This document shows, in pieces, positions 26,721-60,321 of a stretch of 64,000 bases of DNA (the stretch's first letter is position 1; every line of letters begins with the position of its first letter). The stretch covers positions 12,874,784 to 12,938,783 of the forward strand of contig CM121341.1 in NCBI GenBank assembly GCA_051530055.1, read 5' to 3'. The position numbers were made by a program, and so were the translations under genes. The notes under the pieces were generated by a model that made no database searches, was not told the origin of the DNA, and saw nothing but the letters and a program-made list of their open reading frames with translations. Origin of the DNA: Neoechinorhynchus agilis (Eukaryota > Animalia > Acanthocephala).

Positions 26721-26741
26721 TATTCTATTAGATTTAACAAA

Positions 26742-28929: not shown

Positions 28930-31750
28930 GATATAAGCACTTTCTCTGTGACTATAATTTGATAATATGTCGGAGGTGTTCTAGATGGGGGCACCACGAA
29001 TCGGGCTGTGTATTCCCCTCTAAATGCATCATCCTGCTCTCACTCTGATTCTACCACTTGTGCAAGCTATGGCAAGAATCATCCGGCCTTTGCGCGCTCT
29101 TGCAAGTTCGCGCAAAAATACTGACGATTCCTTATCATCGAAGCAGCGGGTCTACTATAATAAAAATAATAGAGAAACCTATCCTCATCAAACTCCTCTC
29201 TCCGGACGGCTTTTCCTCTAAGGAGTTGAAGACTCAACCTCCCTCTAATGGTTACAACTCTAAGCTTCCCCCCAAACCTCTGGAAAAATCTTCTTTTGAA
29301 AGTTTAATATCTTCCCTCTCCAATTCTCCACTTGGTACCGGTAAAGAAATCTCCTTGCTTAAGGGAATCCTTTTTTGGATTCTTTACAAACTTGATAATT
29401 GCTCTGTATCGGACTCTTCCTCTAACACATCATCTATATTACCTAACCTAAACTCTCTAAAAAACTGGATTGATTGTGAACATTCTAAAAGGAATATTTC
29501 CCCATCTTCACTTGACTTGGAATCTATTAGGACTTTCCTGCCTCTAGGGCTTCGCGTCTTTCCGTTTTCTTACTCCTTGTATATTTGATAACTATGTTAA
29601 CATCTTATGTTTTCAAGAAACCGGCTTTTCTAAATTCTTTCTTTTTGATAATTATGATTCTCATATTCTTCTCCCTTGCTCCTCATCAACCAATCAGCAT
29701 ACTGGCTTCTCTGGAGGACTCCAAACATTTATTCTTAAATCTCACTATTCTAAACTTCTCTTTCAAACTAAAAATATCTCTTTTGCAATGCAAATTCTTT
29801 CTTTTAAGAATCCCTTCTATGGTACCTCATCCTTTTTCTCGCCTACTCTTATCATTTGCAACTTGTATATTCAACCGAGACATGTGGAAAAATTTATTAA
29901 ATCTTTTATACATATCCTCCGTTACTGGAATCCCGACTTTATTGTCGGTGATTTCAATAGTAATTTTTTAAATGGTTTTAGGCCCTTTTTCAAGTTTCAC
30001 AATTTTTTGCTCCCTAAATATTCTTCATTTCATACTGCTAAATCCAATAGACATACCTTCTTGGATAACGCAATTATTAAAAAGTCAATTCCAATTTTAT
30101 TCTATCCTGCTTCCCAACATCAGTCACAGAGATTATTAGGGCGTGACTTCATTCTTTTTAAATCTAATGCCATTTCTCTTAAGGACACTTTTGTTTTTAA
30201 TCCTCAAAGGTTATCGAAATTTAATAATGATCTCTTATCTTTTATGAACTCACATACTTCTATCTCCTTATCTGACTTTAATAATGCTATATTATCCTCT
30301 GTACATAAAAATTTAATTATTAAGTCTATGATCAAGCGACCCCCTGTTTGTCATGAAGCCAACATGTTTTATAAAAAGCTGTTATAGCTGATTTGTATAA
30401 TAACTCCCCACTTAAAAACTTCTTTATGAAAAATTTTTACACGGCTAAGTTTTATCATAAAGTTTCTTTGGACAAAAAGAAGCTGATCTCTCCTAAGCCT
30501 TTTGGTAAGGGCTTCTGGTCCTGTATTTTGAACAGGAGACCAGTTTGTTGGAAGGCAAACGCATCCAACTGGATTGCCTCTATATCTTATCCTGCAGTAA
30601 TCGAGTCTATTTTGATGGCGCATACTTTTAGTGCATGTTCTTCTCCTCCACTTCCTTTCTATAATAAAAAGTCCTCATGGAATTTCGAAGTAGAAGCTTT
30701 TTTAAAGGCTTGTAAATCAAACCCCTCTAAGGCTTATAATATAAGTGGTACTTCACCCAAAAAATTTACTGCTATCTCTTATGAAGTTCAATCGATTTTT
30801 TAATAGGCTTCGTTTATCGAAAATTGATTTTAATGATCTCCTGAACATTAATATTGTCAAGAAAATTTTTATTCCCAAGACGAAAGGACGCATTTTTAAC
30901 GCTACCCTCATTTGAATCATCTCCATACAGAACCCAATCGTCTCTTGCTTAGAAAGAGCGGTTAACGGGAAGCTGTATGACTTTTTAGTTTCTAGAAATC
31001 TTATACCTGACTTTTTTCATGGTTTTATTAGGGGTAAAGGTGTTACTTCGCTTTTATTCTCTCTTAATTCTATGAATGAAGCTATTAATTTACAAAAACT
31101 TCTCATTCAGTTCGATATTAATAAGGCTTTTGACGCCTTGGATCGCTCTTTCCTTAACGAGGCCTTAGTTAATCTTAAAGTTCCTCTAAATATTATCTAC
31201 AAAATCAACTATCTTATATAATCTAAGTCATTTTACTATGAGGTAGACCCTTCTCACACTAAATTTTTCTCTAGGTATGGCGTTCCTCAAGGCTCTCCCC
31301 TCTCGCCCAGCTTATTCTTAATTGTCCTCATATATATTTTTAAAAAATTAAAGAAATCTTCTTCCATATTTCCGCTAGTTTATACGGATGATATATTTCC
31401 ATTTTGTAAAGCTAGAACATCTTCAATCCTAACTAATAATATAGCTAATTATATGCATTCTTTGTCTTCGGAACTTAGGAAAGCAAATCTGGTTGTAAAT
31501 AGTAACAAAACTTTCTTTATTCCACTTACTAAAACCTTGGTCTCTAGGAAGCTCCTAAATAATGAATTAGCATCTAATTTAAATTTCCTTAATATCAACT
31601 TTAGATCACATTCCAGGATTTGAAGTGTAGAATTCCCTTGTAAGAATCATAGAATTTTTATTAACTCTTCCGTTAAAAGTCTATTGGCAAAAACAGTTAT
31701 CTTCATCAAAAGAGCAAAAAGGCTCTCCATCTCTTCTCTTTATATCTTTA
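28930..31750 (+). mobile_element. Decayed AT-rich APE-type LINE (gag-like knuckle, APE, RT)
   Basis: CAS.GKNHPAFARSC; IVGDFNS and TFLDNAI (APE); HGFIRGKG, QFDINKAFD, YGVPQGSPLSP, YTDD (RT). Confidence 0.75.
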
Positions 31751-31759
31751 AGGTTTTAA

Positions 31760-33260
31760 AAATCACATGTACACCAGTTTCGATTGGGAACAGACGAAAG
31801 ACGAGATGAGAGGAATAATTTGCGGGCTATACGAATGCGTTTTGTCAGTGTGGAGTGGAGGGAGGGGTAAGCGGGATTACTTGACCGGAAAGCTTTGGTG
31901 ACCTGCATTTGAAGGGTTTTTAGAAAAGGTGAGAACCATGGAAGGTCGCGGTTCAAGATTCGTACTGTTTTGCGATTAAAGGAGGCCTTCATCGCAGGTT
32001 CTATTAGATTTAACAAAGAGCAAATTGCAATCGAGGGGTCGGTGCCAAAGATGGTAGAGCGGTTTTGCGTGATAAGAGAATTGACATATACAGCAAAGGA
32101 TTGGGTATGATGATCACGTTTATCCCAGACAACGTAGGGGTCGGAAAAGGAATCATGGATTCGTGGGTGGACATCGTAGTAGGGGGTGATTTGAGTGTAG
32201 GGACCATAAGGGTGGGAACTGTGCATGCAGGATGAACTCGGGGAGAAAGATGATATTGGGAGTTGAAGAGGTGGTGGTAAGAGGTGAGGTACTTTGAGCA
32301 TCCAAGGCATTTTTCGCTTTTGAGGGTCGAAGCGAAAATTTCCAGATTTGGTAGGGTGCGGAATGAGTGGTGGCAAGGATGAGAGGGGTCTAGGAGGAGT
32401 TAATTTACGCAGCGAGGGATGCTTAGTGTAGTCGTTGAAAGATGGTAGGGATGTGTGCTTTTTACTGGAAAATCGAGGTACAGGAGAGAAGGTGGTAGGT
32501 TTTGATGGGTCTAATATTGAAACGTAATCGTGGAAGGATGGGAGGGGTTTATGGTTTTTTCTTGCAGTACGGGGTGCTAGAGAGGAGGTGGAGGATTTAG
32601 ATGAGGAAGAGGGGTTCGGTTTTAATGGCGGAGTAGAGTTAGACTTAGAGTGCAGGGACGAGGGAAAAGGTGTATGAGAGATGATAGGAACGGAATTTCA
32701 GGAGGGGAGAAGATTGTTGAAGAGAAGTCGAATTAGAATGTGGAGAGGAGTCTTGGAATGCGCCGACAGCAAAGGGTGGGTGGACAGTATTTAAAGAGTG
32801 GAGCGAGGGAGAAGAGGTGGTTTGGGGTGGGTAAACTGAAGATGGAAGGGGTTGGGGGGTTCGGGTTTGGGAGGAGTACTTATTGGGAAGGGGGGAACCG
32901 GAGAACACGGTTTGAGCAAGGCGGCAGTACAAAAACCGGAAATAAATTTCCGGCCTGCTGCCCAAGTATTTGTGACGAATATTTGAGTTGTAAACGGACA
33001 ATCGTCCATGTCACAGAGAACGAGCTTGGTGGTTGGGCGCTTTGGCCTCGGCATTGTTTGCAAGTGTTTATGACGTTAGATCGTGCGACGACGTTTATGC
33101 TCACAGATTTGATTGCAATTGTTTACGACGTTAGATCTTGTGACAGCGTTGATTGTCTGGCAAAGAAAATATTCGATGATGTGTGACGACGACGAGAGAG
33201 AGAACGTTGACGATTGACGAGAGAGAAGGTTAAACGTTGACGAGAGAAAAGAACGTTGAC
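31760..33260 (-). mobile_element. 5' half of an L2/CR1-like LINE (5'UTR, Cys-rich ORF1, APE remnant)
   Basis: 31821-32020 is nearly identical to 26542-26741; Cys-rich CKQC segment; short gacgagagaga..aacgttga repeats at 33185-33260. Confidence 0.7.
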
Positions 33261-33336: not shown

Positions 33337-33590
33337 TCATAGCAATCTATCTTTTTTGCCTTTGTAAAGAGACAATACTGATACTTTTCCGACCGAAACA
33401 ACCTTGAATCGAACACCAGGAATATCTCCAACGGCATAGCCCTTTCGACCGAATATAGCCACCATCACCTCGTCGTTTTCCTCGATAAAATTCAGACAAC
33501 CATCCCGAGGAACGAAAGCAGTGATTTTTCGTCCATTCTTTATGAACTGCAACTCTAACGCATTTTCTAATGGCAGAAACTATTCCTTTC
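33337..33590 (-). pseudogene. RPS23: 5'-truncated 40S ribosomal protein S23 pseudogene
   Basis: AIRKCVRV / [46 protein letters not shown]; 1-nt frameshift near 33551; N-terminus replaced by CRE sequence. Confidence 0.9.
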
Positions 33591-33599: not shown

Positions 33600-34560
33600 G
33601 CTCACAGCACATTTTTTAGACATAACGATAAGCTGGCAAAATTAGACGAGACGGTGAAAGTCTCTCTCGAGAAAATTTTAAATACTCAGCTGTCGGACGA
33701 GGCCAGGCGTCAAGCGTCCATGCCTGTATCGTCCGGCAGTTTAAGTATCCTAAAAGCAGCCGAAATTTCTCTGCCAGCTTATTTGGTATCGTATAAAGCT
33801 AACCGCATATAGTTTAGTCTTTTCTTGGCGAGAATCACACTTTGGATGAAAATTTCGTGGAGGCTCTAAATCTTTGGTGTGAAGATTCCAGTAATGAGCA
33901 TGTACCCGTCAGTCAGTTTGGGACTAACCCTGTTAATTTCAGATTCTCGTGACCTGGTGAACCGAACTTGGTTGGCAGCAACCTCTACAAGAGAATCGGG
34001 TGTATGTCTCAACGCTATCCCAATCGCTTCTGTGGTTACCCGTCTCTCAGGCGAGACAGTAAAGATTGCAGTGTCCCCGAGACTTGGGGTACCGATGTGC
34101 ACATCCCATCGCTGCCGTTGCGGAGCGACCGTGGATCCATCTGAACGCCATGATCTTGTCTGTCGGCAATCGGGCGGAAGGTACTTACGCCGAAGTGAAC
34201 GCAATTCTTAGTCGTGCCCTGTATACTGTTAATGCGCCTAACATCCTAGGGCCGAGCAATCTTTGCCGACTCGATGGCCGTAGACCGTACGGTGTCACAG
34301 TATTCCCGTGGCGAGAAGGCAAAGCCTTCTTTGGGACGCCACGTCCGTAGACCCGCTTGCGGGCAACAACAACATAAAATTCGCCACTATTAAACCAGGG
34401 AGAGCAGCTTTCGGCCCTAATCACTGGCCATCCGAGATCAGGAGAATTCCTCCTACAAAACATCAGTCTTGCTGTGCTACGGGGGGGACGAAGCATCGGA
34501 CCTTTCGACTATTGCACCAGGACGGCAGCTGAGTGATCCAGAGCGGTGGTGTGAATGATT
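33600..34560 (+). mobile_element. CRE 3' fragment
   Basis: Highly similar to 13020-14100 (CRCG, PSNLCRLDGRRPYGVTVFPW). Confidence 0.85.
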
Positions 34561-39590: not shown

Positions 39591-41807
39591 TTAATCAGAA
39601 TCAGACGAGTCCGCAGCGTACGTCCTTCGTCTTCCTCTCCGAATTCGCAAACTTGAGCGCCTAGGGGGCGACGGTAACCGTTTCCTAGATCTCGGCAACG
39701 AGAAACTTGGATCTTTATCATCTTCACCTAAATCTCTATGGGTTTCATCATTAGATTTTGAATTGTAAAGAACACTGTGTTCGGCAATGGTCATGGAAGC
39801 GAGATGCCGATGACTCGTTGGTGGAGATCCCGGTTCGGTCTTGATCTGATGAGTACGTAACAAAACTTCATTTTCAGTCGGTTCGGTTGACTGTTTATTA
39901 TTTAAGCGCAAAGTTTTCACTCTTTGAACCGGCTTTCTCCGTTGACTCGACAGTGGCTTTCTTTGTGAGGTCACTGTGCGTCCGGGCCCCATTGCTGAAT
40001 ACATTCCTTCTTGATCTTCTACACCGTAGTTTCCGCCCTCCTCGTCCGTGCTGCTCATATAACTCGCCTTCGCTCCTGCAACAATGTTAAGATGATCCTT
40101 TTTCATGTGATCCTTGGACGTCTTCATATGTAAGACGCACTTTCTGCAGAATTTGTACTTTGAGACGAACTGTCCGTTTTCTTGGTTGAAATGTACCATG
40201 AGATGCCTTAGAGCGTTTTCACAGTCCAAGTATAGAATTGTGTCTTGAGCAGCGTCAGTCTCAATGGATCCCTTTCTATTACTTCCCGCGTAAGTGGGTT
40301 TGAGTTCAACTGCCTCAAGGCAAAAAGGACAATAAAAAAGATCTTCACCTCGATGAAATACAGTAAAATGGAAAAGCATATCAGCATGGAAACTTGTTCT
40401 ATAGCCACAAACGTCGCAGCTATAAGGTAACTCCATTCCACAATGACATACGAATAAGACTCTCTCGACATGATAAGCACCATTTTTATCGAGAAAGACT
40501 TAATGGCTTAAATTAAGATGACAAGCTAACTCGAGAAGGCTTCGATGATTCTGCTCACAGATCCGGCATCTATACTGCTTCATGTCGTGTATGTGAGTTT
40601 TATCCAAGTGAAGAATGTACTCAAACGGAGTCTCGAAGGTCGGCTGGGATGGACAGTAAGCACAAGTTCGGTTGATCGCCGCGGCATACGGATCTGGACT
40701 CATTAATACGGTCAAATTCGGATCTATGAGTCTATCGTGAATCTGTTCCTCGGTCCAACTCACGACATCTTCAAGATGACCACACAAATGACCAGCCAAT
40801 GAAATGTTGTCCGTTATTCCAAAATCGCATATGCAACATTTAATCTTTGAAACGTTGAACCGATGAGCGACCGTAAGACACTGAGTCTTAGAACTCCATT
40901 TATTCGAATAGTATTTTTTTAGAATACCACGGTACGAAGCTTCCAATTGTGTCTCAAGACCTTCTTCTCGTGTCCGGATAATCCCTGGACGAAGCGCAGG
41001 AATCGCATTTGATCCCTCATAAGGATTATGGATTTTCTCTTGGAATGCCGATTCCAAAAAAGGAATACTTGCCTTGGGTCCTGGAATCGGTCTGCTGCTT
41101 TTAACCGGCTGACGAATTCGTTGTCCACAACATCGAAGACACGAATCCTTAAAGTAACCATGCTCGCAAATCGGCCGATTTAACGCCGTACAATCAAAAT
41201 GGAGGAACGCCGTCCGGTCCCGGATGGTTTGTCTGTTCCGGACAGCCTGATTTATGTTTTCAGCGCCATAAAGTCCTCCTTGAAGAGGGGGCAACGGACC
41301 TGACCATGGCTCGGATTTTATAGTTGAAAACGAAAAGTCCTGTCCACCGACAATAGAGATATTGTCTAAATTTGCAAGACCAACAGCCGGGTCTTCTAAA
41401 TAATGACTGCATCTCTTTTGGGTTTCAGAGAGTTCGTCATTTTCGCTTACCATTATCAAAGATCCAGTTCTACTCAATATTTCATCACTAACGTCATTAT
41501 TTATATCCATTAGAAGATCGACAAACTGCGAGTTGCATTCAAGAGTCCAATTGTGCTTATTGCAGCATTCAAACCGACAAGGAACAAAATCCGAATGAGG
41601 TTCTTTTTTCATACGAATCGAATCCTCAATCGAAAAATGATCAATGCAAATCAAAAACTTTAATTCCTCATCCAGCACAATTCCATAGGGCCAACACGCA
41701 CGGATCCATAATTCAGCCAATCGTCTTTCCTTCGGCAACGGAACAAGCCTGTCCCATTGTTTGTGTCGAGAACATGTTAGAACTATGCACCGGACTTCCC
41801 CATGCAT
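39591..41807 (-). CDS. THAP-domain plus ZNF280/POGZ-like C2H2 protein, two exons (41807-40503, 40442-39591)
   Basis: THAP: CIVLTC..LPK..W..ICIDHF. Joined fingers CRICEQ..HLNLSH|CGMELPYSCDVCGYRTSF..HF..H..FYCPFC follow the ZNF280 pattern H-x(KPGEMPYV)-C. Confidence 0.8.
40443..40502 (-). other. Candidate non-canonical stem-loop intron (60 nt; a 51-nt form is also possible)
   Basis: Begins with an in-frame TAA; 14-bp stem (40502-40489 with 40468-40455); flanked by a CATT direct repeat; no GT-AG solution keeps the finger histidines. Confidence 0.7.
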
Positions 41808-43156
41808 TCTCTATAATTCCTGATCTTAAAAAAGAACATAATGATCATACTTCTTTCAGGCACGAAATGCGTGACGTAATTAGATGTCCTAAGGAGAAAA
41901 GATACCCAAAGTTTTGCCATCCACCCCTCCGAGGATAAAGAAAAGAAAGAAAATAGAAATGCGTTGTTTACAAGTCTTCATCCGGTAAATCACTTTTTTT
42001 GAACTAAAGACGTTCTGAGAACCCCTTTGGGTTCATCACCAGTTTGTTACTTTGTTATTAAAAGACAACAAACTGATGATGATTAACAAGGACGAGGTTC
42101 GCAGAAATTGTTTACTGGATTGAAGACTTGTAAACAACACACACTCTCAGTTACCTCTTGACATATCGACATTGTGACGTAACATTTGGACCCCAAACGA
42201 TAAGATTCTTCCGTGTATCAGCCACATTTCCACAGTTTTGAGAATTAGAAAACTCGAGAAATTAATGATTTTTCTTTACACCAAAGTCTCAAACTTGATT
42301 AATCATGCGGCTGCGAAATTAAGTAGTATTTCACAAGAATACTTCTAGGTTACTAAACAAAGCTCCATGATTTCCAGAGTGCTCAATAATAAATTCAAAG
42401 TACTTCGCTTCATATTGTTTTGTGATGACAACCTCAAACGATCAAAATGGCCGTGGATGCGATTTAGATCAGAAAGAAACGACTTGATCGAGATGGATGT
42501 GCTTACGAAAGTCGTGTATTTCACGTCTTTTCGACTCTGTGAAACCTTTTTATTTTTGTATTTTTTGGTGATGAGAGACGATTAGTTATTGGAATTATTA
42601 CAACTTGAACAATTTGGACGAGACGGACGAAATATTTTTGAATTAACGGATTTATTCCTTGTTGAACGGATCAAACCCGAGAAGTATTTATGTTATTAAT
42701 GTTTCGTGTACAAAATCCACTGAGACATCTACAAAAATTGGTAAGGGAAATTTCAGCCTCGCAATCCCAATCAACGACTTGGTGCTGAAAGAAAGCCGAA
42801 CATTGCGCAGGGCGTTCGAGCGGGCACCAACTCCCCGAACCACGAGTACGGCGAACCCGTGCTCCTGAGCCTCCAATATTGTAGATGTCTGAATAAGTGG
42901 ATTTTGTCCACAAAATATTAAATAGTAAGAATATTTCTTGGAGTTTGATCCGCTCAACAAGAACATCTTTCCACCCGAACGTGGTCCTGCATGAAAAAAA
43001 ATAATATATTTAATCTCTATTTTTCGCTCATCACCAATGAAAAAAGAAGGGTTTGGAGATCTGACAAAACGACGCCTCTTATTAATAACAAAAAAGAGTG
43101 CTCGCCTGAGACTTTACGATTGCTTTCTCAACAAAAAAATGATGGTCTTCCTTTAG

Positions 43157-44311
43157 ATGGGTATTTTAGAGAAGATCCATGAGATCGAGCAAGAAATGGC
43201 TCGGACTCAGAAAAACAAAGCAACCGAATACCACTTGGGTCTTCTAAAAGCTAAATTGGCACGTTATCGTAGTCAATTGATAGAAGCAAGTACATCGAGT
43301 CAGAAATCGGCAGGAACGGGTTTTGACGTGATCCGAGCCGGTGATGCTCGTGTAGCGTTGGTGGGGTTTCCTTCGGTTGGAAAGTCCACTCTTCTTCAAG
43401 CACTGACGAACACGGAGTCCGCAGTGGCTGCTTACGAATTCACGACGTTAACGTGCGTTCCGGGAGTTCTCGACTACGCCGGAGCTCGAATTCAGTTGCT
43501 CGATTTACCCGGAATTATCGAGGGAGCTCACGAAGGACGAGGAAAAGGCAAGCAAGTGATCGCTGTTGCCCGTAACTCCGATATGGTCCTTATGATGCTC
43601 GACTCAACCAAGGCAGATTCTCAACAACGAGAAAAACTGGAGTATGAGCTAGAATCCGTTGGAATTAGGCTTAATAAAAAACCACCCCCGATATACTACA
43701 AAAAACGAGCTACCGGCGGTCTATCCATTAACGCGATGGTCCCTTTGACTAAATGTCCCAAAAATCTGGTTCAACAAATCCTTCACGAATACAAGATTTT
43801 TAACGCTGAGATTCTGTTCCGAGAAGATTGTACTCCTGATCAGTTGATCGATGTAGTGATTGGTAACCGCGTTTATATTCCCTGTCTCTATGTCTACAAC
43901 AAAATCGATGCGATTGCGATCGAAGAAGTCAATCGCTTATCATTAATTACGCTTCTTTTTAAAAATCTTATAGAAATGTAATTGCTGATTGTAGCCAGAC
44001 TAAAAGACTCGATTGTATGCAGTTGCAATCTTAAATTGAATTTTCCTTACGTCCTTCGAAAGACCTGGGAATATTTAGAGCTGATTAGAGTTTACACAAA
44101 GAAACGAGGGCATAAACCCGATTTGGTTGGTGCGAATATTGTTAGAAATGGAAGCCGAGTTCGCCATATTTGTCTTCTTATTCACAAATCAATGATTACC
44201 AATTTCAAATATGCGCTCGTCTGGGGAACAAGTGTCCGATTCAGCCCACAAAGAGTCGGAATCGCTCATAAACTCCATGATGAGGACGTTGTGCAGATCG
44301 TAGCGAGATAA
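43157..44311 (+). CDS. DRG2: Developmentally regulated GTP-binding protein 2, two exons
   Basis: MGILEKI..KATEYHLGLLKAKLA, GFPSVGKST, YEFTTLT, DLPGIIEG, YNKID, TGS domain KYALVWGTS..SPQRVG. Confidence 0.95.
43939..43992 (+). other. Candidate non-canonical stem-loop intron (54 nt)
   Basis: Removal restores EEVNRL-ARL; contains an in-frame TAA; 18-bp stem 43939-43956 with 43972-43989; ends AT..GT (junction can slide by about 1 nt). Confidence 0.8.
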
Positions 44312-44769
44312 GAGAGCGAGAAAAACAATATTGCGAATTTTTTTGTCGCTTTAGATGAAAGAAAATCAATCCGATGCATCGATTTAGCCTTGCACGAATC
44401 AACGAAATAAAAAAATGCGAAAGCAAACCCCGGCAATAACTATGTCCAGAATAAAAACGTCGCTAGTAATTTCGATATTATACGGTAATTAAGGGAAACG
44501 GTTTTAAGACATTCATTTCGTTGGCACGAAAATCAAGAATGCATCGTGAAAACTTTGCCATTTGCGTCGTATCCTTCATTGTACGATTTACGTTTCTTCC
44601 GTGATTATACCGCTCAATTAAATGACTGATGCAAAATAAGAGAACAATTGAACATGGTTGAACGAGTAAAATATTGTTAAGAATCATCGAGAAAATCTTT
44701 TCTTGGTGATATTGAATTTAGAAATATTTCGCCGAATGAGGATGCATCGAGACTTGGAAAAAAGCTACA

Positions 44770-44893
44770 AGAAAAGAATGTACTGCTTGTTTATGGCGGT
44801 GAAAAATTAAAACAAATTTATTGATTCCACTTTTGAATAACCTTGATCAAGAGGCGTGCAATTGGACTCAATAAATTCTATTAATTTTTTCAC
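44770..44893. mobile_element. MITE family A copy
   Basis: Reverse complement of 11788-11915. Confidence 0.8.
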
Positions 44894-45886
44894 TAACACA
44901 TAAAAACCCTCGGAATAATTAAAAAAAATTAAAAAGCAATTTTACTGAACTTTTTAATTGATTGTTACACACTGCCTTTTCTAATTTTGAGTTCGAAGGA
45001 CAGAACTATGATCAAATAGATGGGCTGGCAATGGGAAGCCCACTTTAGCCAGTTCTTGCTGAACTTTACATGAGACATTGGGAGGAGTCAAATTTGACCA
45101 AGTTAAGAGGTATAGAATTCTGGTGTCGATATGTAGACAACACCATTATCACATTGGACCAAGACAGAAGGACAGCTGTCCAACTTCAACAGGAACTAAA
45201 TGAAAAAGATTCCCATATTCAATGGACATGCGAAAAAGAAGATTGTGGTTTTTTACCATTTCTCGATGTACAAGTCAAAAGAAACTATGATAACACTTTC
45301 TCCACATCGGTCTATATCAAACAGGGTGTCCCGCATCGAATAGTACCTTGGATCTCAGCTCAACCACACAAATACAAATTATCGAGATTCCGATCACTAG
45401 TCATCAGAGCATACCGATATAGCTCGAACTTGAATTGCCTCAATAACGAACTCGATAGATTATGGAATATATTTAAAAGTGGTGGCTATCCAAAGAAATT
45501 AATGTTAAGAACATTGAAAGATACTCAACAAATGATCGGAAGGGAACCTACAAAAAATCGGGATATCGGATCTTCAACGAATGCAGACACACGATATATA
45601 GAAATTCCTTGCATAAATGATAGGTGGAATTACAATATAGAAACATTGGTCAAACAACTCGATATGAAGAAGGAATGTATTATGTATTCCAAAAGGGGAC
45701 AAACACTATATAGTTTGTTACAACCTAAAAGAGTGGACAATATAAACGAGTGCGTCTATAGGATCCCCTGCATGGACTTTGATCAATCGTATCTAGGACG
45801 AACGAACAATATAAAGAGACGGCTCAACGAACATCGCAGAATTGTGTCCAAAAGAATGGATACAAACTCTGCGATTGTACACCACG

Positions 45887-48800
45887 TGTGGTGGACACAA
45901 ACAGTTTTATTCAACTTGAAAATAACGGTATGTGTAAATGCGTACGTGCGAGTGGATTAGTAACCGGCTGAATTATGGCGACGGTCTCGTATAATTTTTA
46001 CATCATTCTCGCCCTCTTAGAGTTTTCACTGATATCGTTCTGGTCTTCGTCGAATTCGTGTAGATCTGCGGAGTTCCGGGGCACTCGTAGAAGGTTGACT
46101 CGGGAATATCTCAGTACGGCAATCAGTGGTACAGTTTTTTTTGTCTTCTAGTGGGACCTTCGTTTCGCAATCGTTTGGATCACCGGAACCCGGTCTTCGA
46201 CTGTCTTCGTCTGGACAATTGATGAGATTATCGTTAGTGCTATCACGTACTGGAAGTTTGGGAAGGTCCTTGGTCGAAACTGAACTTTCCGTACCATCTT
46301 CATATCGTATTCTTGCATGTGTTGAATTCGCTTCTATCAATTCAACTTCTCGCACTAGCGGTTCTGTTTTATTTCGCACGAAATTGCGTAATAATACTCG
46401 ACCTGGAGACAATAACCAGGACGGGAGTGACGAGCCATAAGATGATCGCCTCGCAAAGCTGAAAAATCGGTCGTGGGGAGTAGAGTTGGTTGTTCGTACG
46501 ATTAGAGGCCGAGCGGCGTGCAAGGCTTGAGGCAATACCTCCTCCCAATCCGATATGCGCAAACCGCGTGAATGGATAGTTAAGCTCAGGGATCTCCAAA
46601 TCGTGCCATTGAATCGCTCTACCTGAGCGTTGCCCGTAGGATGATACGAAGTAGTGCGGCTGCTGGCTATTCCGTTCGCCCTCAAGAACTGACTTACTTC
46701 GCTGCTCAAGAAAGCCGCTCCTCGATCGCTGTGGACATATCCAGGAGTCCCACACAGTGAAAAGATTGAAGTAAGGCATCGAATTACCGTCTGACTGTTG
46801 ATATTTTCACAAGGAATGGCAAACGAGAACCTAGAGTATTCATCGATTGCGGTAAATAGGTACTTGTTGGAAGAACGGGACGGAAGTGGGTCTTTAAAGT
46901 CAATCGATACCCTATCCATCGGCTTTAATGCCTGTATCAGTTGGGAGTCCACAGAGGGTCTGTAAAACTGCGGTTTCACAAAAGCGCACGTTCTGCAGTT
47001 CGAGCATATCGACCTGACCTCGGATGTAGAGAATGGTAAGTTCTTCGATCTGACAAAATGAAGTAACCTACTAACTCCAGGGTGGCAGAGTTGCTTGTGA
47101 ATCTCTTCTAAGTCAGTCAGGTCGATTGCATTGGCCCTCGATAACGCATTCGCAGCGATATTATCTTTGCCAGGGCGATAACGAATTTCGTAGCAGAGGT
47201 CAGAGAGCTCAATGCTCCAGCCTAGAATCTTGTCGTTCTCAATTTTGGTTCGTTGGCGACTGTCCATCATAAAAGCTACCGATTGTTGGTCAGTTATAAG
47301 CTGAAAACGTCTTCCATTCGGTAGAGGTCTCCATTTTCTGACAGCTTCGACGATTGCCATCGTCTCCTTTTCGACGGCAGGATATCGCATCTCGCACTTG
47401 TTGAGCGTCCAGGACATGAAGGCCACAGTTCTTCCGTTTTGGTTCAGTGTGCCCGAAACGGCAACATCAGGCGCGCCGGATTCGACGGTGAATGGGCTAT
47501 CCGCGTTAATAGCACCCAAGGACGCATTTCCCAACTCTTTCTTCAATTCTTTGAGAACTCTGATCTCATCGGTTTCCATCGGAAATTTACTACATTTGTA
47601 GAGTATTTGAGCTTTCGACGAAAATTCCTGGATCCACTTTGAGTAATAGGCCAACATTCCGAGCATTCGAGCTAGACTTTTTGAATCAGAAGGAATAGGC
47701 ATTTCAAATAAGGAACGCAGTCTTTCCGGATCGGGCCGAATCTTTCCATTGCAGATGTTGTAACCCATTAGATTGATAGATCGGACCGACGATATAGTTT
47801 TGGAATGATTCAAAGTCAACTTCCGTTTCTCGACAGCTTCCATAAAGAGCTTTACATTCGAGTCGCGTTCCTCCTGTGATTTACTTGCTTGCTACAGTAA
47901 CATTATCTAGATATGAAATCGTACACTCCAAATTCTCTTCTTTAATCATATTATCCATCGCCCTTTTAAATGCGGCGACACCGTTTGTAACGCCAAAAGG
48001 TATACGCGTAAATTGGTAAAGATTACCATTCGCTTCGAAAGCGGTGTACCGTCTTTCGGAAGCAGGTATGCCGATTTGATGATACGCACTTTTTAAGTCG
48101 AAGGTAGAAAATACGCGGTATTGAGCGATGGTATTAATAAGCTGCTGAAGGTTATGCAATGGGTAAGCGTTTAACGATGTAAATCTATTGATAGTCTGCG
48201 AATACTCAATAACTAATCGCTTCTTGTCTGAATTCGAGTCGTTTTTGACGACTACAATCTGGGATCTCCACGGAGATCGACTAGGTTCTATCACGCCTGC
48301 ATAAAGTAACCTTTTTACTTCACCATCGATAAAAGAACGGTCTTCAACGCTAAACATTCGCGATTTGGTCACAACAGGCTTAATATTCCGAAGGATCGAG
48401 TTAAACAATGGGGTTTCCAACATATCAGCTTTGATCAAGTTGCAACAGTCTGATAGGGGCCTGATTGTCAATTCATCTTTGGAACCATTATAGACAAAAC
48501 GAATGCTTCTGTGGAGTTTTTGAACTTCTAGACCGAGTATGACGTCCGTACAAGGGTCCTCCAACACACTGAATTTGACAGCCTGATAAGTTCGATTTTC
48601 CACAAGAATGTCGACGAGACATTTGCCTTTGATTCGAATCTGTTGACTTGTCGTAGCCAGCTTGACTATACCTTCCGATGCAATCGTTTTTAGTCACAGA
48701 TTCATGGCAACCTTGTCGCTAATAAAGTTGCTCGAACTACCTGAATCGATCATAGCAGATAACGGTAGCCCCTCAATGATCACGCCTATAAGGAACATTC

Positions 48801-49747
48801 GATTGATTGGATCTGCAAGCTCGTCGCTGGCACATAGAAACATAGTAGCGGAGGCGTCCTTCTACCGCTTTTCTAAGGGCTTGGATCGATATACTTTACC
48901 CCAATGGCCTATTTTTCCGCATTTCGAACACTTAGACTTTCTGGCAGGACAACGAGATCTTGTATTCAAATCAAAACCGCAAAACCAGCACTTTTTGACT
49001 TTATGGCGGCAGCTATTTCCATATCCTCCATTTCAGGCTTTTGGTGCGAAATCGATGGTGGAGCTTCAACATAAGCTGCAATAGGCGGCGCTTGACGGTC
49101 ATAAATTTCAGCGTTTCGCTGGCCGATCGCCTGGGTCAAACTTAGAGCATGATGTTCCAGAAGGCGTTGGCGAACTATGGGGGATGAAATCCCACTAACA
49201 AAAGCATCGCGAATGAGTTCTAGTTGGTATTGCTCAGCGGTCACGTCCGTTAACTGACAGTTTCGGCTTATGCAGTTTAGTTCTCGGAAGAACTCGTCGA
49301 TTGACTGAGATGGTTGCTGCTGGTACGTAGCCAACACATGTCTGGAAAAAATTGAATTCGCCTCCTTAATGTATGCTTTGTCCAAGATCGCAATCGCCTT
49401 ATCAAAATCTGGTTGGTCCGCTATCATTTCATATATGTTTAGACTGACGAAACGTATCAAACATTGAGGTTTGTCCGTACATTGATTTCCATATGCAGCT
49501 ACGAAGTTGTTAAACGTTTTCTTCCAATATTTGTATTCACGTTCAGACGAAGGAGCAGTCGGTTCGATCGTTAGTTTTTCCGGACAGAGAACTCTTTCCA
49601 TGATACGGGATTTTTTCAAGTTGAATAAATTGTGGTGGACACACAGTTTTATTCAACTTGAAAATAATGGTATGCGTACGTGCGAGCGGATTAGTAGGAG
49701 GCTGAATTATGGTGACGAGGAATTAGTCGCCTATAATTATTACGTCA
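45887..49747 (-). mobile_element. Complete Ty3/Gypsy LTR retrotransposon with broken ORFs
   Basis: TG..CA LTRs 45887-46005 and 49631-49747; 5-bp TSD CCACG (45882-45886, 49748-49752); gag with zinc knuckle, protease MIDSGS, RT YLDN, RNase H, integrase HPG..C..C and IDFK; purine tract next to the 3' LTR. Confidence 0.95.
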
Positions 49748-51639: not shown

Positions 51640-53699
51640 TCAAGAGTATGCCATAAAACAGTAGTGTTAAATAATAAAGCCTGAGTAATAGTCGTTGAAA
51701 TGGGTTGGGCGCTTGGAGGTTTTCACGTTTCTTCAATCAGCCAAATCGAAATTCTTGCAAAGATAGTGATGGTCAATGTTTGAAAATTAGCAATCGCGAT
51801 TGCTTAATCACTTAAATCAGTTTTCAGAAATGATTCGCAATTAAAACTAACCAACTCCAGATTCTCGTCTTTATGATTATACAAGAATTCGAATTAAAAA
51901 TTTGAAATATTTTAAGAGAATCATCTATGAGGATATTTGTTCCAAGATTCAATGTAAGCAGCAATTCACAATCCGCAAATGATAGTGTAAACGAAATATA
52001 CGAGCATAGTAAAAAATACCGATCATAATTCCAGTTATATCACAATAGGTTTATGTGTTATAATGAAAGGTATAGCTACGAACTAAGGATTATGGCCTTA
52101 TCAATCTAAAAAATTACGGTTTACATCTTTTACTTAAATTCTTTAAGTGGCCGAGAGTTCAATTTTCGCATTTTCGGATTCTACGCAGAAACCACGATAA
52201 ACAGGAGAGAGAGTTAAAATCTTGATGCTGAGCAGAATGATTTAGACAACCATTGCACAACGTCCAATGGTTGATGATGCATTATGTCACTGTCGATTGT
52301 TGCACTTATTTCAGCAAATCAGAATCTTAAAGGAGATGTATTCGTATATATGATATAGAACAGTCTTCGGAAAATTACAGAAGCAATTAGCGACTTTAAT
52401 TCTTTAGAAAATCATGTGTCGCTAGCAACACTCGTTTACCTCGGGTAAGCGGTAATATTCTTTATTTTTACGCTTTAATTGTTTTCCGTCTTAAGAGAAG
52501 CGCCTTCCAAAAAATTATTGCTTTTACGCAGCTTCCGTTTCAAATTTAAGTTTACAATATTTTATTCACGCGTCTAATTGCTTCCGAAATTAATTTTGAA
52601 ACAAAAAGAATGTGGTTTGTCTAGTTCTTTTCTATGCTTTCTAATTTCCGGTTTCGTAAAGTTTACTTCCGAAATTAATTGAACGGCGGGTTTAAGGTTT
52701 GAGAACTTTTCGCACTTTATGGTTCACAAATAATGGAAAGGCCTTCTCCAAAGACAAAAGAAGAAATTAGCACGCGGTCTAAGAATAAAATGAAAACTTT
52801 ATGAACAGAAGAACACTCGATATTATTTTTGTCATCTACACGAACTCGAAATTATCCTCTATGGGCGTGAATTTTCGATTTTTGTAGCCAATCAGAATTA
52901 AATTACCATCTTTGTCCTAACGCATTTCTCGGAATGTAGAAATATTTTTGAAATAAATATAGTCAATAATGCGTCTATTTTTTAAATGATAAATATGGAA
53001 AGGGTCTAATGAAATCATGTTGCTTTTCTGAATTTCAACGCTGAAAAATAAATATGTAATGGTGTTCCGTTGCTAAATTCCAAGATTTAATCATGGCGAC
53101 AACTGACTAAGATGTACCACTTTTTGTCTGTTTTTCACCTTTGGACGGCGAGGTTGATGTCTGTGGCTAATTCTTCACATCTTTAGAATTCAAACTGTCA
53201 TAAAAAATCATAAAATTCAATCATTACAATTGTCTTTCTTTTGGTAGTTTTTAACCCTGATTTAGATTCAATAATTTATATCCGATATTTCGTCCCATAA
53301 TTCCCACATTATCAAGGTTTGTCAGTGTATATTAATAATAAACAATGACAAACCTCGGGAAAATGTTGAAATTATCCGAGAAGTAAAATATCAGAAATAA
53401 ATTAGTGAATTTACACCCGGGCTTGGCAAAGCTACCAAAAGAAATTACTTTTCTTAGAAGATAATCCAAGATATTACGACTATGAACGCTTAAATTTTAG
53501 CATATAATTAAGAATTTCGCAAAACGCTAGAATCACCATTAAGCAAAAAGCATTGGTTTTAATGAAACAATCTGATTGGCTGGAATTCAAAAACCGGAAA
53601 TGACTGAAGTAAAACGGTTGAATTCGACTATGTTCGCTCTTAACCGTTCTTTACAGTTGCTCACTTATCTGAAAAAATTGTATTAAACAGAGAACAAAA

Positions 53700-54625
53700 A
53701 TGTACAATAGACGATTTACTGATTTTTCGATCGATCGATTGCTTGGACGCTCATTTTGCATGGACGATATTTTGGAGACCCCTATTCAAATACCATTCAA
53801 AGGAGGTCACTCTTCGTTTCAAACTCCATTACAAGGCATAAACGACGACAAATCGGACGAATCTGATCAAAAGCAATATGTTGAAGATAAGCTTGATTTA
53901 TTTTATGCTCCGCCCGCTTTAGGTGTTCTTAATATACATTTAGGGGCGAAAAGAAGAAAGATAAGTAAAAATTCGTTGCTAACGAAACACAAATACATTT
54001 GCGAAATATGTAACGGTGGATTTGATAGACCTTCTTTGCTAGCTCGGCATGTCAGAATTCATACGGGAGAAAAACCTTTTGCATGTTTTGATTGTCATAA
54101 AAGTTTCGCTACTACTTGTGCCTTGCGCGCTCATGCTAGAATCCACACTGGAATTAAACCGTTTGTATGTAAAATTTGCGGCAAAGCTTTTACAGCCGAC
54201 AGCAATCTTCATTATCATATGTTTACTCACAAAAGGGGAGAACTCCCACATAAATGTTTAGTTTGCCAAAAAGGATTCGCGACACCTTCAGAACTTAAAA
54301 ACCATCAACCATCGCATACAAACCAATGGCCTTTTAATTGCAAATGTGGAAAACATTTCGCAAAGCCGAATCTTTATAAACGCCATCTTATGAAGCATCT
54401 TGGTAAGTTTTTGTTTACTTTTAACTCACCAATACTTTATTTCCGTATTTTTCCATAGGTATGAAAGACGAAGAATGTCCTTTTTGCTCTAGAAAATTTA
54501 CTGTACCTTCGAAGTTGGAGGAGCACGTTAAATCAATACATGGAAAACAATATAATGGACAATACAAAGACGAACATTTTTCTTTAAACAACCTCATTGC
54601 TGCTTTTGACAAATCATCAAGTTGA
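53700..54625 (+). CDS. eh1-motif C2H2 zinc-finger transcription factor (6 fingers), two exons
   Basis: N-terminal FSIDRLL (eh1); tandem fingers with TGEKPF-type linkers; exon 2 GMKDEECPFC..HVKSIH. Confidence 0.88.
54403..54458 (+). other. Canonical GT-AG spliceosomal intron (56 nt)
   Basis: G|GTAAGT..actcac..ttccATAG|GT; splicing adds a sixth C2H2 finger in frame. Confidence 0.92.
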
Positions 54626-56142: not shown

Positions 56143-58245
56143 ATGGATAAAGACGACTTGGCTAAACTAGTGCCGATCAATTACATTGAACGGAGCGAAG
56201 ATGCATTAAGGCAGAGATTTTCTCCTATAAGACAGTTGTTAAGTACTCGTAAACTACCAATTGAAGGCTTCGACAAAGTGACTATTGATTATCTCGTTTC
56301 ACTTCTCTCTCAAATGGACAGTAACAATTATTTGAACATCGCCGGTGTCGGTGAGCGAGAAGGACGTATCGCTTCTCCTAAAGTATTTGACCGGGTTTAT
56401 GGAATGTGTCACGGAATCGGTCGTTCAGGCGATCTTTATGATGCTCAACCAAAAGCGTGTGGATCGAGTATCCTAGCGGCACTTACGAATCGCCTAGTGG
56501 TCGATGCTCTACAGGTTTCCGGATACAAACAAGCCCACGATGCATTTGTTGTTCCGATGGCTACCGGGATGACTCTTAATTTCTGTTTGCAATATCTAAG
56601 AAAATCGGCAATCAATGATGGCAGATCAGACGCAAACGTCGTCTTGTGGCCTAGAATCGACCAAAAGTCATGCATTATAGAGTAAATGGATCGGAGAGGT
56701 AGGTGGGCGAAAGGGAAAACAAAAATCTTTAATATTTATCTCGAAACTGAAATATTTTCGAATGATCTTTGTTCCCGTGCAAAGATTCGATGAGTCCTAT
56801 TTTTAATCACGAAACCTTTTGCACGAAAACCAAACGAACTTTTATTTTTTGACGAGATCAATGCTTTGTGCTTTATGGAACTAAAATTGATAGAGCTGCA
56901 AATCTTTTTCTTACTCTCCAAAGCGTTCACCATTATTACTTAAGCTTCCACGAATCCAGCCTTATTCTCTAGCATCAATTTCTTTAAAATTGTGGTGAAG
57001 ATACTTCGCCGTTTATAGTGTATTTTATTGAATTAAGAGATATTCCGAAAGGGGAAGCCTCGTCTAAATTAATCTAATCGACTGATTAATTTACAATGAC
57101 TCGTGAGGCGAGGCTTCCTCTTTCAGAATATTTCGTAACGAGAAAACTCACCGGCAATGACAAACCTTGAGAGGAAATGTCGAAACTATTCGAGAGGTGA
57201 AGTATCGGGGAAATACATCATCTGTGAGTTTAAATCCCCAGGGTAGACTTTTGCTTTACGGATAATCGCCAACTGTTTACTGAATTTTGCTGCGCTAAAA
57301 CACGATCCGTTCACCGAAAATCGATAACGCTATGCGGTCTAACGATAAAAGTGATTGAAAACGTAATAGAAAATGATCAAATCCGAACAGACGTCGATAA
57401 AGTAAAAGAAGTTATGCACTCAATTGGACGAGATAAGATTTTGTGTTTGATTTCGACCACAAGCTGCTTTGCCCCTCGAGCGGTGGACAAACTACTGGAA
57501 TTGGCCGAAATATGCCGGGATCATGAAATCGCTCATCTAATAAACAACGCGTACGGTGTTCAATCAGGGAAAATTGCTCATGACCTCGAAAACGCAGCTC
57601 GAGTAGGCCGTGTGGATTTCGTTGTTCAAAGCACAGACAAAAACTTTATGGTTCCTGTTGGTGGCTCAGTCGTATTTGCATATAGAGGTGATTTAAACGC
57701 CCTTCGAAAATCATATCCTGGTCGAGCATCAATGGCACCATCTCTGGATTTGTTTATAAATCAGCATTCTTCTTTTATTACTTTGCGACGAAAACTTGAA
57801 GAATGCTTATGTAACCCTTCTTAGTCTTGGCGTAAATGGGTACAAGTGTTTATTGCAAACGAGAAAAGAAATGTATCGAAAACTAAAAGATCGAGTTGAT
57901 GTTATAGCTGCCAAATATAATGAACGAGTTTTGAATACTCCTAATAATCCGATCTCAATGGCAATGACGCTTACGGGTTTCTCAAATAGACATGGCTTGG
58001 AGTCTGTTACTTCCATAGGATCGAAACTATTTAGCCGACATGTAACCGGATGTAGAGTTGTTCCTCTTGGCCAAGGAAAAATTACTAAAGTGGACGGAGT
58101 CGATTTCGTTAATTTCATGAGTCACCATGCCTCCTACCCTCACGCCTATCTGAATTTTGCGGCCGCGATCGGCATGAACGATACCGATATTGACCGATTC
58201 TGTAAGAAATTGGATGAAGTACTTTCTGAATATCGCAAGGAATAA
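56143..58245 (+). CDS. SEPSECS: O-phosphoseryl-tRNA(Sec) selenium transferase, three exons (56143-56676, 57318-57755, 57811-58245)
   Basis: GVGEREGR, HGIGRSGD..QPKA.GS, VPMATG, WPRIDQKSC, STTSCFAPR, NNAYGVQ, QSTDKNFMVPVGG, YPGRAS. Confidence 0.95.
56677..57317 (+). other. Candidate non-canonical intron (641 nt) with paired termini
   Basis: Removal gives DQKSCI-KSITLCG; gtaaatggatcg (56682-56693) pairs with cgatccgttcac (57303-57314); ends AT..GA. Confidence 0.7.
57040..57131. mobile_element. Palindromic MITE-like element nested in SEPSECS intron 1
   Basis: gaaaggggaagcctcgtct (57047-57065) pairs with gaggcgaggcttcctctttc (57105-57124). Confidence 0.65.
57756..57810 (+). other. Candidate non-canonical stem-loop intron (55 nt)
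   Basis: Removal fixes a frameshift and restores SLDLF-(V/I)TLLSLG; perfect agcattcttc/gaagaatgct stem. Confidence 0.8.
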
Positions 58246-59130
58246 TTTCCGATTTCGATGATTGAGCTGACTGCTTATACAAAAGAACGTTTTCTTTCCA
58301 AATCTACTGATTTAATTTATTTTAAGAAATGGTATCTTAAGTTAATGTAAAATTATATCCATTAACTTTACAATAATTTCCGATGGGAACGGGGAAACAT
58401 CTTTGTCCTCCTTTGCCTAGAGAATGCATTCAGCATTCCCTTTTTGAGAAATGATCCGGCACATTTTGTTACTTAACGGCCATCTCGATCTAAAAGTCTA
58501 ATTTTTTTACGCACAAAGAAATTGGATTTTCGAATTGCTAAGCTGATAGTTACATATAAAAGGTGGTCGTATTACTCCGACGGTCTATGTTTTTTAATAT
58601 TTAGATAGTCGCGTATTTAAGAAAATATCACATTCGAAAACTTAGTTGGAATTAATGATGCAAAATATAAACGTTCAAGAATTGCGTTGTCCTTTTGAAC
58701 CCGACTTCTATGATAGGTTATAAAAGGAAATACTAAGAATCCTTAATTTTTCATGTACATTTTTAAATTCCGACCGCACTTTCTAATTTTTGGAATGGTT
58801 TCATAGGTTTATTTATCAAAAACGATATTAAATTCTTGAATCTTGAAATTATTGAAAAAAATTAAATTTCGATGAGTGTTATCGAGATTTAGTTGAACCT
58901 TGTTCGAATTTCAAATATAGAATCAAAGTCATTCATAATGTGTATTTTAGAGTTCATTTCTTGAAAAAAAACTCCAAATCAGATTGCAGACTACATAAAT
59001 TAAAGCTATGACTACGCTTTCTCTTGCCGACATCTCGAAAACTTGTTTCGTAGCGCATTTAATAATCACAATACTTAATGGATATTGGTGAATATAATTC
59101 CTTTATAAAGAACCCTGTCTAAAATTGAAG

Positions 59131-60321
59131 ATGCAATGGACGCGCCACGTCGCAAAATCACTGCTCCAATGCTTGCGTCCGCAGAACAAACCACGAATTG
59201 CTAGTCGCTTTATCGCAGTAAAGTCCGTACATCAGTCAATGCGCCCAGTTGCATATTGGATGTTTGGTTGTGCTGGAATGTCCGCTGGTGCTATATTTTT
59301 GGGTGGAATAACCCGGTTAACCGAAAGTGGTCTGTCCATGACCAGTTGGCGATTTATTAAAGACATGAAGTTCCCTTACTCAGAAGAAGAATGGAATGAA
59401 GAGTTTGAAACTTACAAACAATTCCCAGAATGGGAATTATTGAACAAAGAGCGACAAATGACGCTTTCTCAGTTCAAGTTCATTTATTTTATGGAATATT
59501 TTCACAGAATATGGGGCCGCGGAACCGGCCTCGCGTTCCTTCTCCCGCTTGCCTACTTCTACCCTCGGATATCCACTCAAGGTGGTTCCCGGGCTAAGAT
59601 GGGATTAGCCGCGATGACTATTCTGATGGGATTTCAGGGATTTCTGGGATGGTACATGGTGAGAAGTGGACTGGAGTATGAAACTCTCCAAGACAATATT
59701 CCACGTGTTTCACAATACAGATTGACTGCTCACTTAACGGCTGCATTGGCGTTATATGGTTCTTTTCTGTGGACTGGAATTCATCTACTAAACCCCAAAT
59801 CGAATATTCTCTCATCCACTCGGCCTAGGTTGTTGATGAAGCTAACGTTGCTAAGTTTAGTATTGACCACAACCACGATCATATCTGGTGGATTTGTTGC
59901 GGGCATGGACGCTGGACTGGTGCATAATACTTACCCTGCGCCATGAAATCTTTTCTGTTAGATTTCATGGGATAAAATGTCCGGGCGGTGGATTCCCATT
60001 GATTATTGGTCACCTAAACTATCTATGTGGAAAAATTCATTCGAAAATCCATCCGCTGCTCAATTTAACCACAGAACTCTTGCAACATTTAGCTTGGCTG
60101 TCTTATCGGCGACAGGAATATTGGCTCGAAGAATTCCGATGCTTACGTTACCGGGGAATCTGATGCTTATCGCTACCACTGCTCAGTTCTCACTAGGCGT
60201 ATTCACTCTTCTTTACCAGGTTCCAATTTCGCTTGCATCAGCTCATCAAATGGGCTCAATTGCGTTGTTCTCCAGTGTTCTTTACCTTTTAGCCACTCTA
60301 CTTCGACTTCCGAAACCATAA
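59131..60321 (+). CDS. COX15: Heme A synthase COX15, two exons
   Basis: GGITRLTESGLSMTSW, FMEYFHRIWGR, QGFLGWYMVRSGL, VSQYRLTAH, SGGFVAGMDAGL, QFNHR, HQMGS. Confidence 0.95.
59938..59973 (+). other. Candidate non-canonical stem-loop intron (36 nt)
   Basis: Removal restores GLVHNTYP-KM; contains an in-frame TGA; perfect 11-bp stem ccatgaaatct/agatttcatgg. Confidence 0.72.

Follow-up and report, generated by a model that had tools for sequence, protein, structure and literature searches.

Introners of Micromonas, Aureococcus and Polarella are miniature transposons that have turned into introns and mirtrons are short introns that form a hairpin, and both have GT-AG ends and are removed by the normal spliceosome. 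In Paramecium, interrupting sequences are lost at the level of DNA: a piggyBac transposase, now domesticated, cuts them out within a separate somatic nucleus, and each eliminated sequence must have TA at its two ends. The introner elements of Amoebophrya possess inverted repeats of 8-20 nucleotides (nt), direct repeats of 3-5 nt and non-canonical ends, and their removal from RNA has been documented (Farhat et al., 2021, PMC7789003). For the nonconventional introns of euglenids, an origin in miniature inverted-repeat elements has been proposed, and how they are removed is unknown (review PMC11282704). Among animals, only Fritillaria borealis is known to have a large number of lineage-specific, transposon-derived non-GT-AG introns, which have inverted ends and reside in otherwise conserved genes (Henriet et al., 2019; PMC13326754; review PMC11282704). 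Here, we describe a short hairpin-forming insert in the DRG2 gene of Neoechinorhynchus agilis, an eoacanthocephalan fish parasite, together with two sibling inserts in its SepSecS and COX15 genes, all found in a stretch of 64,000 nt (assembly GCA_051530055.1, contig CM121341.1, positions 12,874,784 to 12,938,783 of the forward strand), hereafter called the window, whose own numbering is used below. We read these inserts, with a probability of about 0.5, as TA-targeting miniature inverted-repeat elements that may be excised precisely from pre-mRNA, in the way of hairpin introner and nonconventional introns.

The N. agilis genome comprises 46.2 Mb with three large scaffolds, assembled by the MaSuRCA hybrid route; the reads (Illumina and Nanopore) came from 50 pooled worms, supplemented by reads from single females, and the genes were annotated with BRAKER2 guided by RNA-seq (PMC12690905). 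The RNA-seq reads, 74 libraries, are deposited as BioProject PRJNA1223661 and a Trinity transcriptome is available at Zenodo (10.5281/zenodo.17199078); DNA reads comprise Illumina, Nanopore and HiFi data. The annotated DRG2 product of 274 amino acids (aa) maps to about 12.92 Mb of chromosome CM121341.1 (19.4 Mb) and is recorded in GCA_051530055.1 only. Within the literature that could be searched, hairpin inserts of this sort are unreported for acanthocephalans: the word "intron" is absent from the N. agilis genome paper (PMC12690905), from a rotiferan gene-loss paper using the N. agilis genome and from the genome paper of Pomphorhynchus laevis, and literature searches by accession returned nothing on such inserts.

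The DRG2 insert, its boundaries and its fold

DRG2 extends from 43157 to 44311 on the forward strand as a single reading frame which, on translation, contains one internal stop. Its features are the following.

43157-43939 (+): upstream coding part of DRG2, Met1 to Leu261, with the G domain (translation, alignment); 75.5% identical to P. laevis
43938-43939 (no strand): left copy of a TA direct repeat that resembles a target-site duplication (sequence)
43939-43956 (+): left arm of the inverted repeat (repeat search and RNA folds)
43940-43993 (+): the insert, 54 nt or 18 codons (alignment and the P. laevis reading frame)
43972-43989 (+): right arm of the inverted repeat, whose reverse complement starts with TACAATCAGCA and contains AATCAGCA, which the SepSecS insert has at its left end
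43979-43981 (+): in-frame TAA in the right arm, terminating the annotated 274-aa product
43992-43993 (no strand): second, right-hand TA of the direct repeat (sequence)
43994-44311 (+): downstream coding part of DRG2, with the TGS domain and the stop, in the same frame and with no second lesion; 62.9% identical to P. laevis

Alignment with seven orthologues fixes the insert at 43940-43993, where 18 extra codons, reading SLITLLFKNLIEM, a stop and LLIV, stand after the conserved ...EEVxRL (EEVNRL in N. agilis) and before the invariant Ala of ARxP (ARLKD in N. agilis), a position at which none of the seven orthologues has any residue. The closest orthologue, DRG2 of P. laevis, is 72% identical, and its gene is an intronless, uninterrupted open reading frame (ORF) of 1,101 nt from which the insert is absent, indicating that the N. 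agilis lineage gained the insert, in an otherwise intronless gene. One TA lies immediately 5' of the insert and another forms its last two bases, so that the boundaries can slide by 2 nt and the placements 43938-43991, 43939-43992 and 43940-43993 are equivalent; a preliminary description of this locus, made from the letters and a list of ORFs, had already noted TA on both sides and had chosen the second of the three. Its statements that the in-frame TAA would remove the TGS domain and that the rest of the gene is intact proved correct as well, since the annotated product covers 274 of 366 aa and is devoid of the TGS domain (PF02824), and neither translation nor the alignment with seven orthologues reveals further damage. 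When one TA and the element are taken out exactly, the orthologous DRG2 protein is restored, and the junction expected in the message would read ...AATCGCTTA/GCCAGAC..., with a 40-mer ...GAAGTCAATCGCTTA/GCCAGACTAAAAGAC... spanning it (the slash marks the point of joining).

The difference in identity to P. laevis between the two coding parts (75.5% upstream and 62.9% downstream) is also seen in pairs of intact orthologues, in which the upstream and downstream parts are 71 vs 61% and 78 vs 63.5% identical, that is, in the same ratio as in N. agilis. Conservation of DRG2 beyond the insert thus appears to be as expected of a working gene. Furthermore, the single-copy state of DRG2, which the preliminary description had wanted checked, was addressed by a protein search of a database that includes N. 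agilis proteins, in which no second N. agilis DRG2 occurs among the best 120 of 7,782 matches; the gene is apparently single-copy.

The hairpin consists of two 18-nt arms and a 15-nt loop, and repeat search and a hand count give 14 Watson-Crick pairs, two G-U pairs and two mismatches, in agreement with the count made at first reading. Folded as RNA, 43938-43993 (56 nt) reaches -10.0 kcal/mol (z = -2.9), a value equalled by 1 of 200 shuffles, and an 81-nt context reaches -15.8 kcal/mol (z = -3.0), with the pairing running on into flanking exon bases. Short strong hairpins, defined by at least 16 pairs and a loop of at most 30 nt, number 33 in the window and 4-13 in shuffles, an excess of about fourfold. 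Coincidence does not explain a hairpin of this strength at the precise site of an insertion that homology defines. TA-flanked weak hairpins are not enriched (184 in the window vs 211-241 in shuffles), a homology-free scan for frame-opening deletions gave hundreds of matches, mostly transposon debris, and was too noisy, and Rfam and tRNA scans of the whole window gave no match. Many strong hairpins are situated in non-coding DNA, for example at 42031-42084, 44664-44719, 53315-53355, 58486-58537, 58860-58894 and 62171-62213.

Canonical splicing offers no way around the insert. The only GT within reach is at 43928, and its combination with AG at 43994, 43998, 44006 or 44022 gives introns of 67, 71, 79 or 95 nt, every one of which shifts the frame into stops; the earlier claim that GT-AG splicing is out of frame, based on the 67-nt pair, therefore extends to all four. 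A GC-AG pair at 43935-43994 (60 nt) would keep the frame; however, the donor (ATC/GCTTAT) is unlike GTAAG, and use of this pair would turn R-L-A, including the invariant Ala, into Pro, so that this option is as poor as had been judged before, and a canonical U2 intron was rejected on these grounds. A U12-type intron was likewise rejected, there being no ATATCC donor and the in-frame AT-AC options losing 3-13 conserved residues, as was a mirtron, for which no in-frame option bounded by GT...AG exists and no Rfam match was obtained in the window. Two clear canonical introns are found within reach, both of 50-56 nt, starting with GTAAG, ending with YAG and unstructured (z = +0.65 for the first below; minimum free energy 0), and these native introns look quite different from the hairpin inserts.

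54403-54458 (+): canonical intron of a zinc-finger gene, taken as control; 56 nt, GTAAGT...TTTTTCCATAG, unstructured
L005 15845-15894 (-): second canonical intron, GTAAG...YAG

A repeat copy at 44787-44907, 500 nt downstream of the gene, is nearly identical to one in opposite orientation at 11780-11900, both with a 65-nt palindrome with the ends AATTTATTGA...TCAATAAATT; this palindrome (at 11808 and 44815) was considered as a discrete mini-element and rejected, being part of the longer repeat. By eye, an element resembling reverse transcriptase and integrase lies immediately downstream of DRG2, and an exact-protein look-up of the integrase ORF found no record.

Sibling inserts in SepSecS and COX15

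Two further genes, SepSecS (56143-58245) and COX15 (59104-60321), carry inserts, and together with DRG2 they lie within 16 kb, each of the three with a single lesion of this type and otherwise free of stops and frameshifts.

57759-57813 (+): SepSecS insert, 55 nt, frame-shifting, with TA at 57757-58 and 57812-13 and a perfect 10-bp stem, z = -3.4
59938-59973 (+): COX15 insert, 36 nt, with two in-frame stops and a perfect 11-bp stem, z = -4.8; TG on the left, TA on the right

Once the 55 nt are taken out, SepSecS can be aligned without gaps to human SepSecS (3hl2) across PSLDLFI/TLLSLG, and alignment of COX15 with seven orthologues from animals places its 12 extra codons precisely after the invariant ...N-x-x-P and before the invariant K. 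Exact removal restores the orthologous protein in these two genes too, the codons abutting all three inserts still encode invariant residues, and in none of the three genes (0/3) are there in-frame canonical splice sites that spare conserved residues. In the deposited annotation, SepSecS is split into models of 154 and 252 aa, the second of which spans the hairpin by a 73-nt GT-AG intron (57752-57824) and thereby loses the conserved LFITLLS, and COX15 is split into products of 280 and 114 aa. The unequal flanks of the COX15 insert fit a duplicated TA of which one copy has mutated. The existence of these siblings makes a non-canonical exit of the DRG2 insert from the message more plausible.

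An 8-nt end motif, AATCAGCA, is common to the reverse complement of the right end of the DRG2 insert (TACAATCAGCAATTAC) and the left end of the SepSecS insert (TAAATCAGCATTCTTC), in both as TA(C)AATCAGCA, which hints that the two elements may be related. The window was extended by 5-6 kb on each side, to about 75 kb in all, and the extensions yielded one more canonical intron and no further clear insert.

One alternative would be that DRG2, SepSecS and COX15 have suffered real insertional knock-outs, as recent pseudogenes or as alleles segregating in the pooled worms, in a parasite lineage that sheds conserved genes and with nothing removing the inserts. The transposon-like TA duplication and inverted ends suit this explanation, as do the shortened or split products of the deposited annotation, and a 274-aa DRG2 would retain its entire G domain; moreover, the genome lacks 44.7% of the metazoan BUSCO set, which its authors interpret as gene loss, and the long-read DNA came from the 50-worm pool (PMC12690905). 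However, a knock-out would have to account for three conserved genes in 16 kb with exactly one lesion each over 1.1-1.5 kb of coding sequence, for invariant residues that are encoded right to both edges of the inserts, for a C-terminal part of DRG2 at the normal conservation ratio and for the absence of a back-up DRG2 from the 120 best matches. Neutral insertion also predicts that such termini should abound outside genes, whereas none were found in the far larger non-coding part of the 75 kb. Finally, one of the three genes is COX15, the heme A synthase, which is required for cytochrome oxidase. On balance, we consider the loss of all three genes unlikely.

Another possibility is a rescue by the spliceosome at cryptic sites, in which a few flanking codons would be removed along with the hairpin or in its place, to give slightly altered proteins. 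In DRG2 the candidates are CA...AG at 43941-43994, changing Ala to Ser, or the GC...AG pair at 43935-43994, and TTGCTGATTGT precedes the AG at 43993-94; the siblings offer in-frame GT-AG pairs, namely the 73-nt intron of the deposited SepSecS model and 59920-59961 (42 nt) in COX15. Yet DRG2, with no in-frame GT-AG, would need a non-GT donor, and the donors are devoid of the GTAAG of both bona fide introns. Invariant residues would also be lost or changed (the Ala of DRG2, LFITLLS of SepSecS and VHNTYP of COX15, which includes an invariant Asn and Pro) although their codons are intact in the DNA, and this route seems to us very unlikely.

Other hairpins in the window stand between reading frames. 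On the reverse strand, 40458-40502 forms a strong hairpin (-18.5 kcal/mol, z = -5.5) that contains the sole stop between two annotated, zinc-finger-like genes of 435 and 281 aa in the same frame; removal of 45 nt would fuse both genes, and a TA-to-TA cut would take out 46 nt and break the frame. This hairpin may be a fourth insert, with boundaries that homology does not fix. At 7942-7981, a hairpin (z = -2.5) adjoins a lone TAA between the same-frame ORFs 7484-7978 and 7982-8629. The former, the only annotated one of the pair, gives a weak match to the double-stranded-RNA-binding domain (dsrm), and the latter shows such a likeness by eye only, with no Pfam match; this candidate, for want of an available homologue, has boundaries that are not fixed by homology either. 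SepSecS itself contains a first intervening sequence of about 640 nt (about 56674-57317), where homology to the human protein requires QKSC-x-KSITL. The sole in-frame GT-AG pair there (56682-57241) would leave 28 extra residues in SepSecS, and the sequence has the complementary ends GGATCG/CGATCC and a 106-nt hairpin inside (57033-57138).

Possible routes of insert removal

In the reading that we favour, excision from pre-mRNA, the DRG2 insert would be the remnant of a tiny non-autonomous DNA transposon, a 52-nt element with inverted repeats that inserted into a TA of the intronless coding sequence, duplicated this TA and was tolerated because it could be excised precisely from the pre-mRNA. 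Its terminal inverted repeats would pair, so that the base of the hairpin would juxtapose both cut sites, and the insert would act as an intron, non-canonical and derived from a transposon, comparable to hairpin introners or nonconventional introns. The cutting enzyme might be a relaxed spliceosome or a separate endonuclease acting with a ligase, between which the sequence does not discriminate. The transposon anatomy is deduced from the TA direct repeat, the terminal inverted repeats, the want of coding capacity and an empty site that matches the orthologues exactly. As in mini-elements that target TA (Tc1/mariner-like), terminal inverted repeats are present, with the arms of the two siblings (10 and 11 bp) being perfect, and the target-site duplication is TA/TA in DRG2 and SepSecS and TG/TA in COX15.

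That removal takes place at the level of RNA is suggested by the precedents of Amoebophrya, euglenids and Fritillaria, by the whole-worm assembly, which retains the inserts, and by BUSCO scores that are higher for the transcriptome than for the genome. The latter amount to 54.9% vs 47.1% for the metazoan set and 71.0% vs 58.4% for the eukaryotic set (PMC12690905), a difference that fits genes broken at the DNA level only.

Several observations weigh against excision from pre-mRNA. With up to three mismatches allowed, short-query blastn and pattern searches found no further copy of either terminus in the 64-kb window, and no related copy of the end motif AATCAGCA was found in the 75 kb, where extra matches are at chance level, which leaves membership in a family putative. 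The three inserts have no common pair of terminal dinucleotides and hence yield no splice rule, and the TCTTT that all share on the sense strand is not significant, being matched in 286 of 5,000 shuffles. Exact-protein look-ups for DRG2 and for an EF-hand gene match the genome only and no transcript, and the DRG2 protein search gave no full-length 100% match. Furthermore, the RNA-seq-guided BRAKER models stop at the TAA (DRG2) or are split (COX15 and SepSecS) and do not bridge the inserts. AUGUSTUS models canonical splice sites only, which makes the failure of these models weak evidence. Lastly, many conserved genes have reportedly been lost in acanthocephalans, making real decay a live alternative (PMC12690905).

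Removal could also occur from DNA, in which case a domesticated transposase would cut germline inserts out, TA-to-TA, in nuclei that are somatic or that express the genes, as in Paramecium, and the expressed copy of each gene would be intact. The boundaries would allow it, with TA on both sides in two inserts and TA plus TG in the third, and the reading frame is regained by restoring one TA; in addition, the short length (36-55 nt), the inverted ends and a TACA found at the right ends recall the eliminated sequences of Paramecium that derive from Tc1/mariner. On the other hand, the left boundary of the COX15 insert is TG and not TA, and the ends TATCATTA and TACAATCA fit the consensus TAYAGYNR only partly at positions 3-5. 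A literature search on DNA elimination returned no report for acanthocephalans, and the whole-worm consensus retains the inserts, which would be unexpected if most nuclei had lost them (PMC12690905). Elimination from DNA is thus regarded as very unlikely.

An assembly artefact, or an insert that stays in the message and is read through, either by recoding of the stop (A-to-I editing of the UAA in the stem) or by ribosomal bypass, appears extremely improbable. The MaSuRCA hybrid assembly made use of noisy Nanopore reads, but Illumina reads were included as well, and exact TA duplications and three exactly restored frames are marks of real insertions. The location of the TAA within the stem would be favourable to editing; however, the SepSecS insert shifts the frame and is beyond rescue by recoding. 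The codons do not suit a bypass: the one at take-off is not followed by a stop, and in all three genes it differs from the one at landing (TTA/GTA, ATA/GTA and CCT/GAT). Programmed bypass of the type known from T4 gene 60 and the byps of Magnusiomyces was accordingly rejected as a candidate, DRG2 having TTA vs GTA with TCA as the next codon and the siblings failing too. Inspection of the fold also led to rejection of a bulge-helix-bulge or IRE1-type site, in that the 3' cut lies outside the stem and 7-nt CNGNNGN loops are absent.

A bolder extension would be a dedicated acanthocephalan pathway that excises short hairpins precisely and independently of splice dinucleotides, by an RNA endonuclease and ligase or by ciliate-like TA-to-TA excision of DNA, in which case many "missing" genes would be intact behind inserts; we regard such a pathway as doubtful. 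If the inserts leave the message, part of the "massive gene loss" of acanthocephalans, as seen by BUSCO and annotation, could be an artefact of gene models that admit only canonical introns, and genes broken by hairpin inserts may inflate the estimates of gene loss in the N. agilis genome paper (PMC12690905).

A tandem array at 17237-17917 is composed of units of about 123 nt, each with two palindromic hairpins of 16-19 pairs. Apart from the host genes, much of the window resembles retroelement debris, including several decayed copies of one element resembling a long interspersed nuclear element (LINE), at 600-3100, 12500-14100, 18500-22250, 26640-28540, 29000-31800, 33600-34500, 45050-49700 and 63230-63560; the reverse-transcriptase ORF at 26640-28540, the sole debris ORF searched, has LINE-type homologues with no match above 53% identity. 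On the reverse strand, 33340-33579 encodes part of the C-terminus of ribosomal protein S23. Its residues have diverged, no upstream part lies in frame, and it is annotated as a 71-aa gene; it looks like a processed pseudogene fragment.

Comparison with known systems

Among the described systems, the introner elements of Amoebophrya share with the N. agilis inserts the complementary ends that fold into a hairpin and juxtapose the exon ends (the arms in N. agilis are 10-18 nt), as well as a short direct repeat over the boundaries, ends other than GT-AG and the lack of an internal transposase. They differ in that the direct repeat of Amoebophrya is 3-5 nt long, whereas in N. agilis it is the 2-nt TA, and part of the Amoebophrya elements belong to repeated families, of which none was seen in the 75 kb of N. 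agilis. Moreover, the host of the former is a protist in which removal from RNA is documented, while N. agilis is an animal whose inserts were read from the genome alone. The nonconventional introns of Euglena are similar in their non-canonical borders, the absence of a polypyrimidine tract, the end-to-end pairing and the junction repeats that resemble target-site duplications. However, their pairing of CAG with CTG (+4..+6/-8..-6) and their pyrimidine/purine junctions do not apply to the DRG2 insert in any of its three placements, and the introns of Euglena can reach kilobases.

The inserts of Fritillaria are likewise transposon-derived, have ends other than GT-AG and inverted, and occur in otherwise conserved genes, but they are mostly AG-AC or AG-AT introns that follow an exonic TAC and are removed by a modified major spliceosome. 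The DRG2 insert departs from this rule, with the termini TA..TG, AT..GT or TC..TA, depending on placement, and an upstream exon that ends in ...CGCTTA without TAC. It also differs from canonical introners and mirtrons in having no usable GT-AG. With the eliminated sequences of Paramecium, for which, as for the inserts, a Tc1/mariner descent is supposed, the inserts have in common that they are short, single-copy and bounded by TA, that they interrupt coding sequence and that removal from TA to TA restores the gene, the difference being that TA stands at both ends in Paramecium and TG on one side of the COX15 insert. Judged by its sequence, the DRG2 insert follows the sequence rules of no single system, yet it resembles the hairpin-type, transposon-derived non-canonical introns, and if the inserts do leave the message, N. 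agilis would represent only the second animal lineage, after larvacean tunicates, that is known to tolerate transposon-derived non-GT-AG inserts in essential genes, and the first animal with tiny TA-repeat hairpins like those of euglenids and Amoebophrya.

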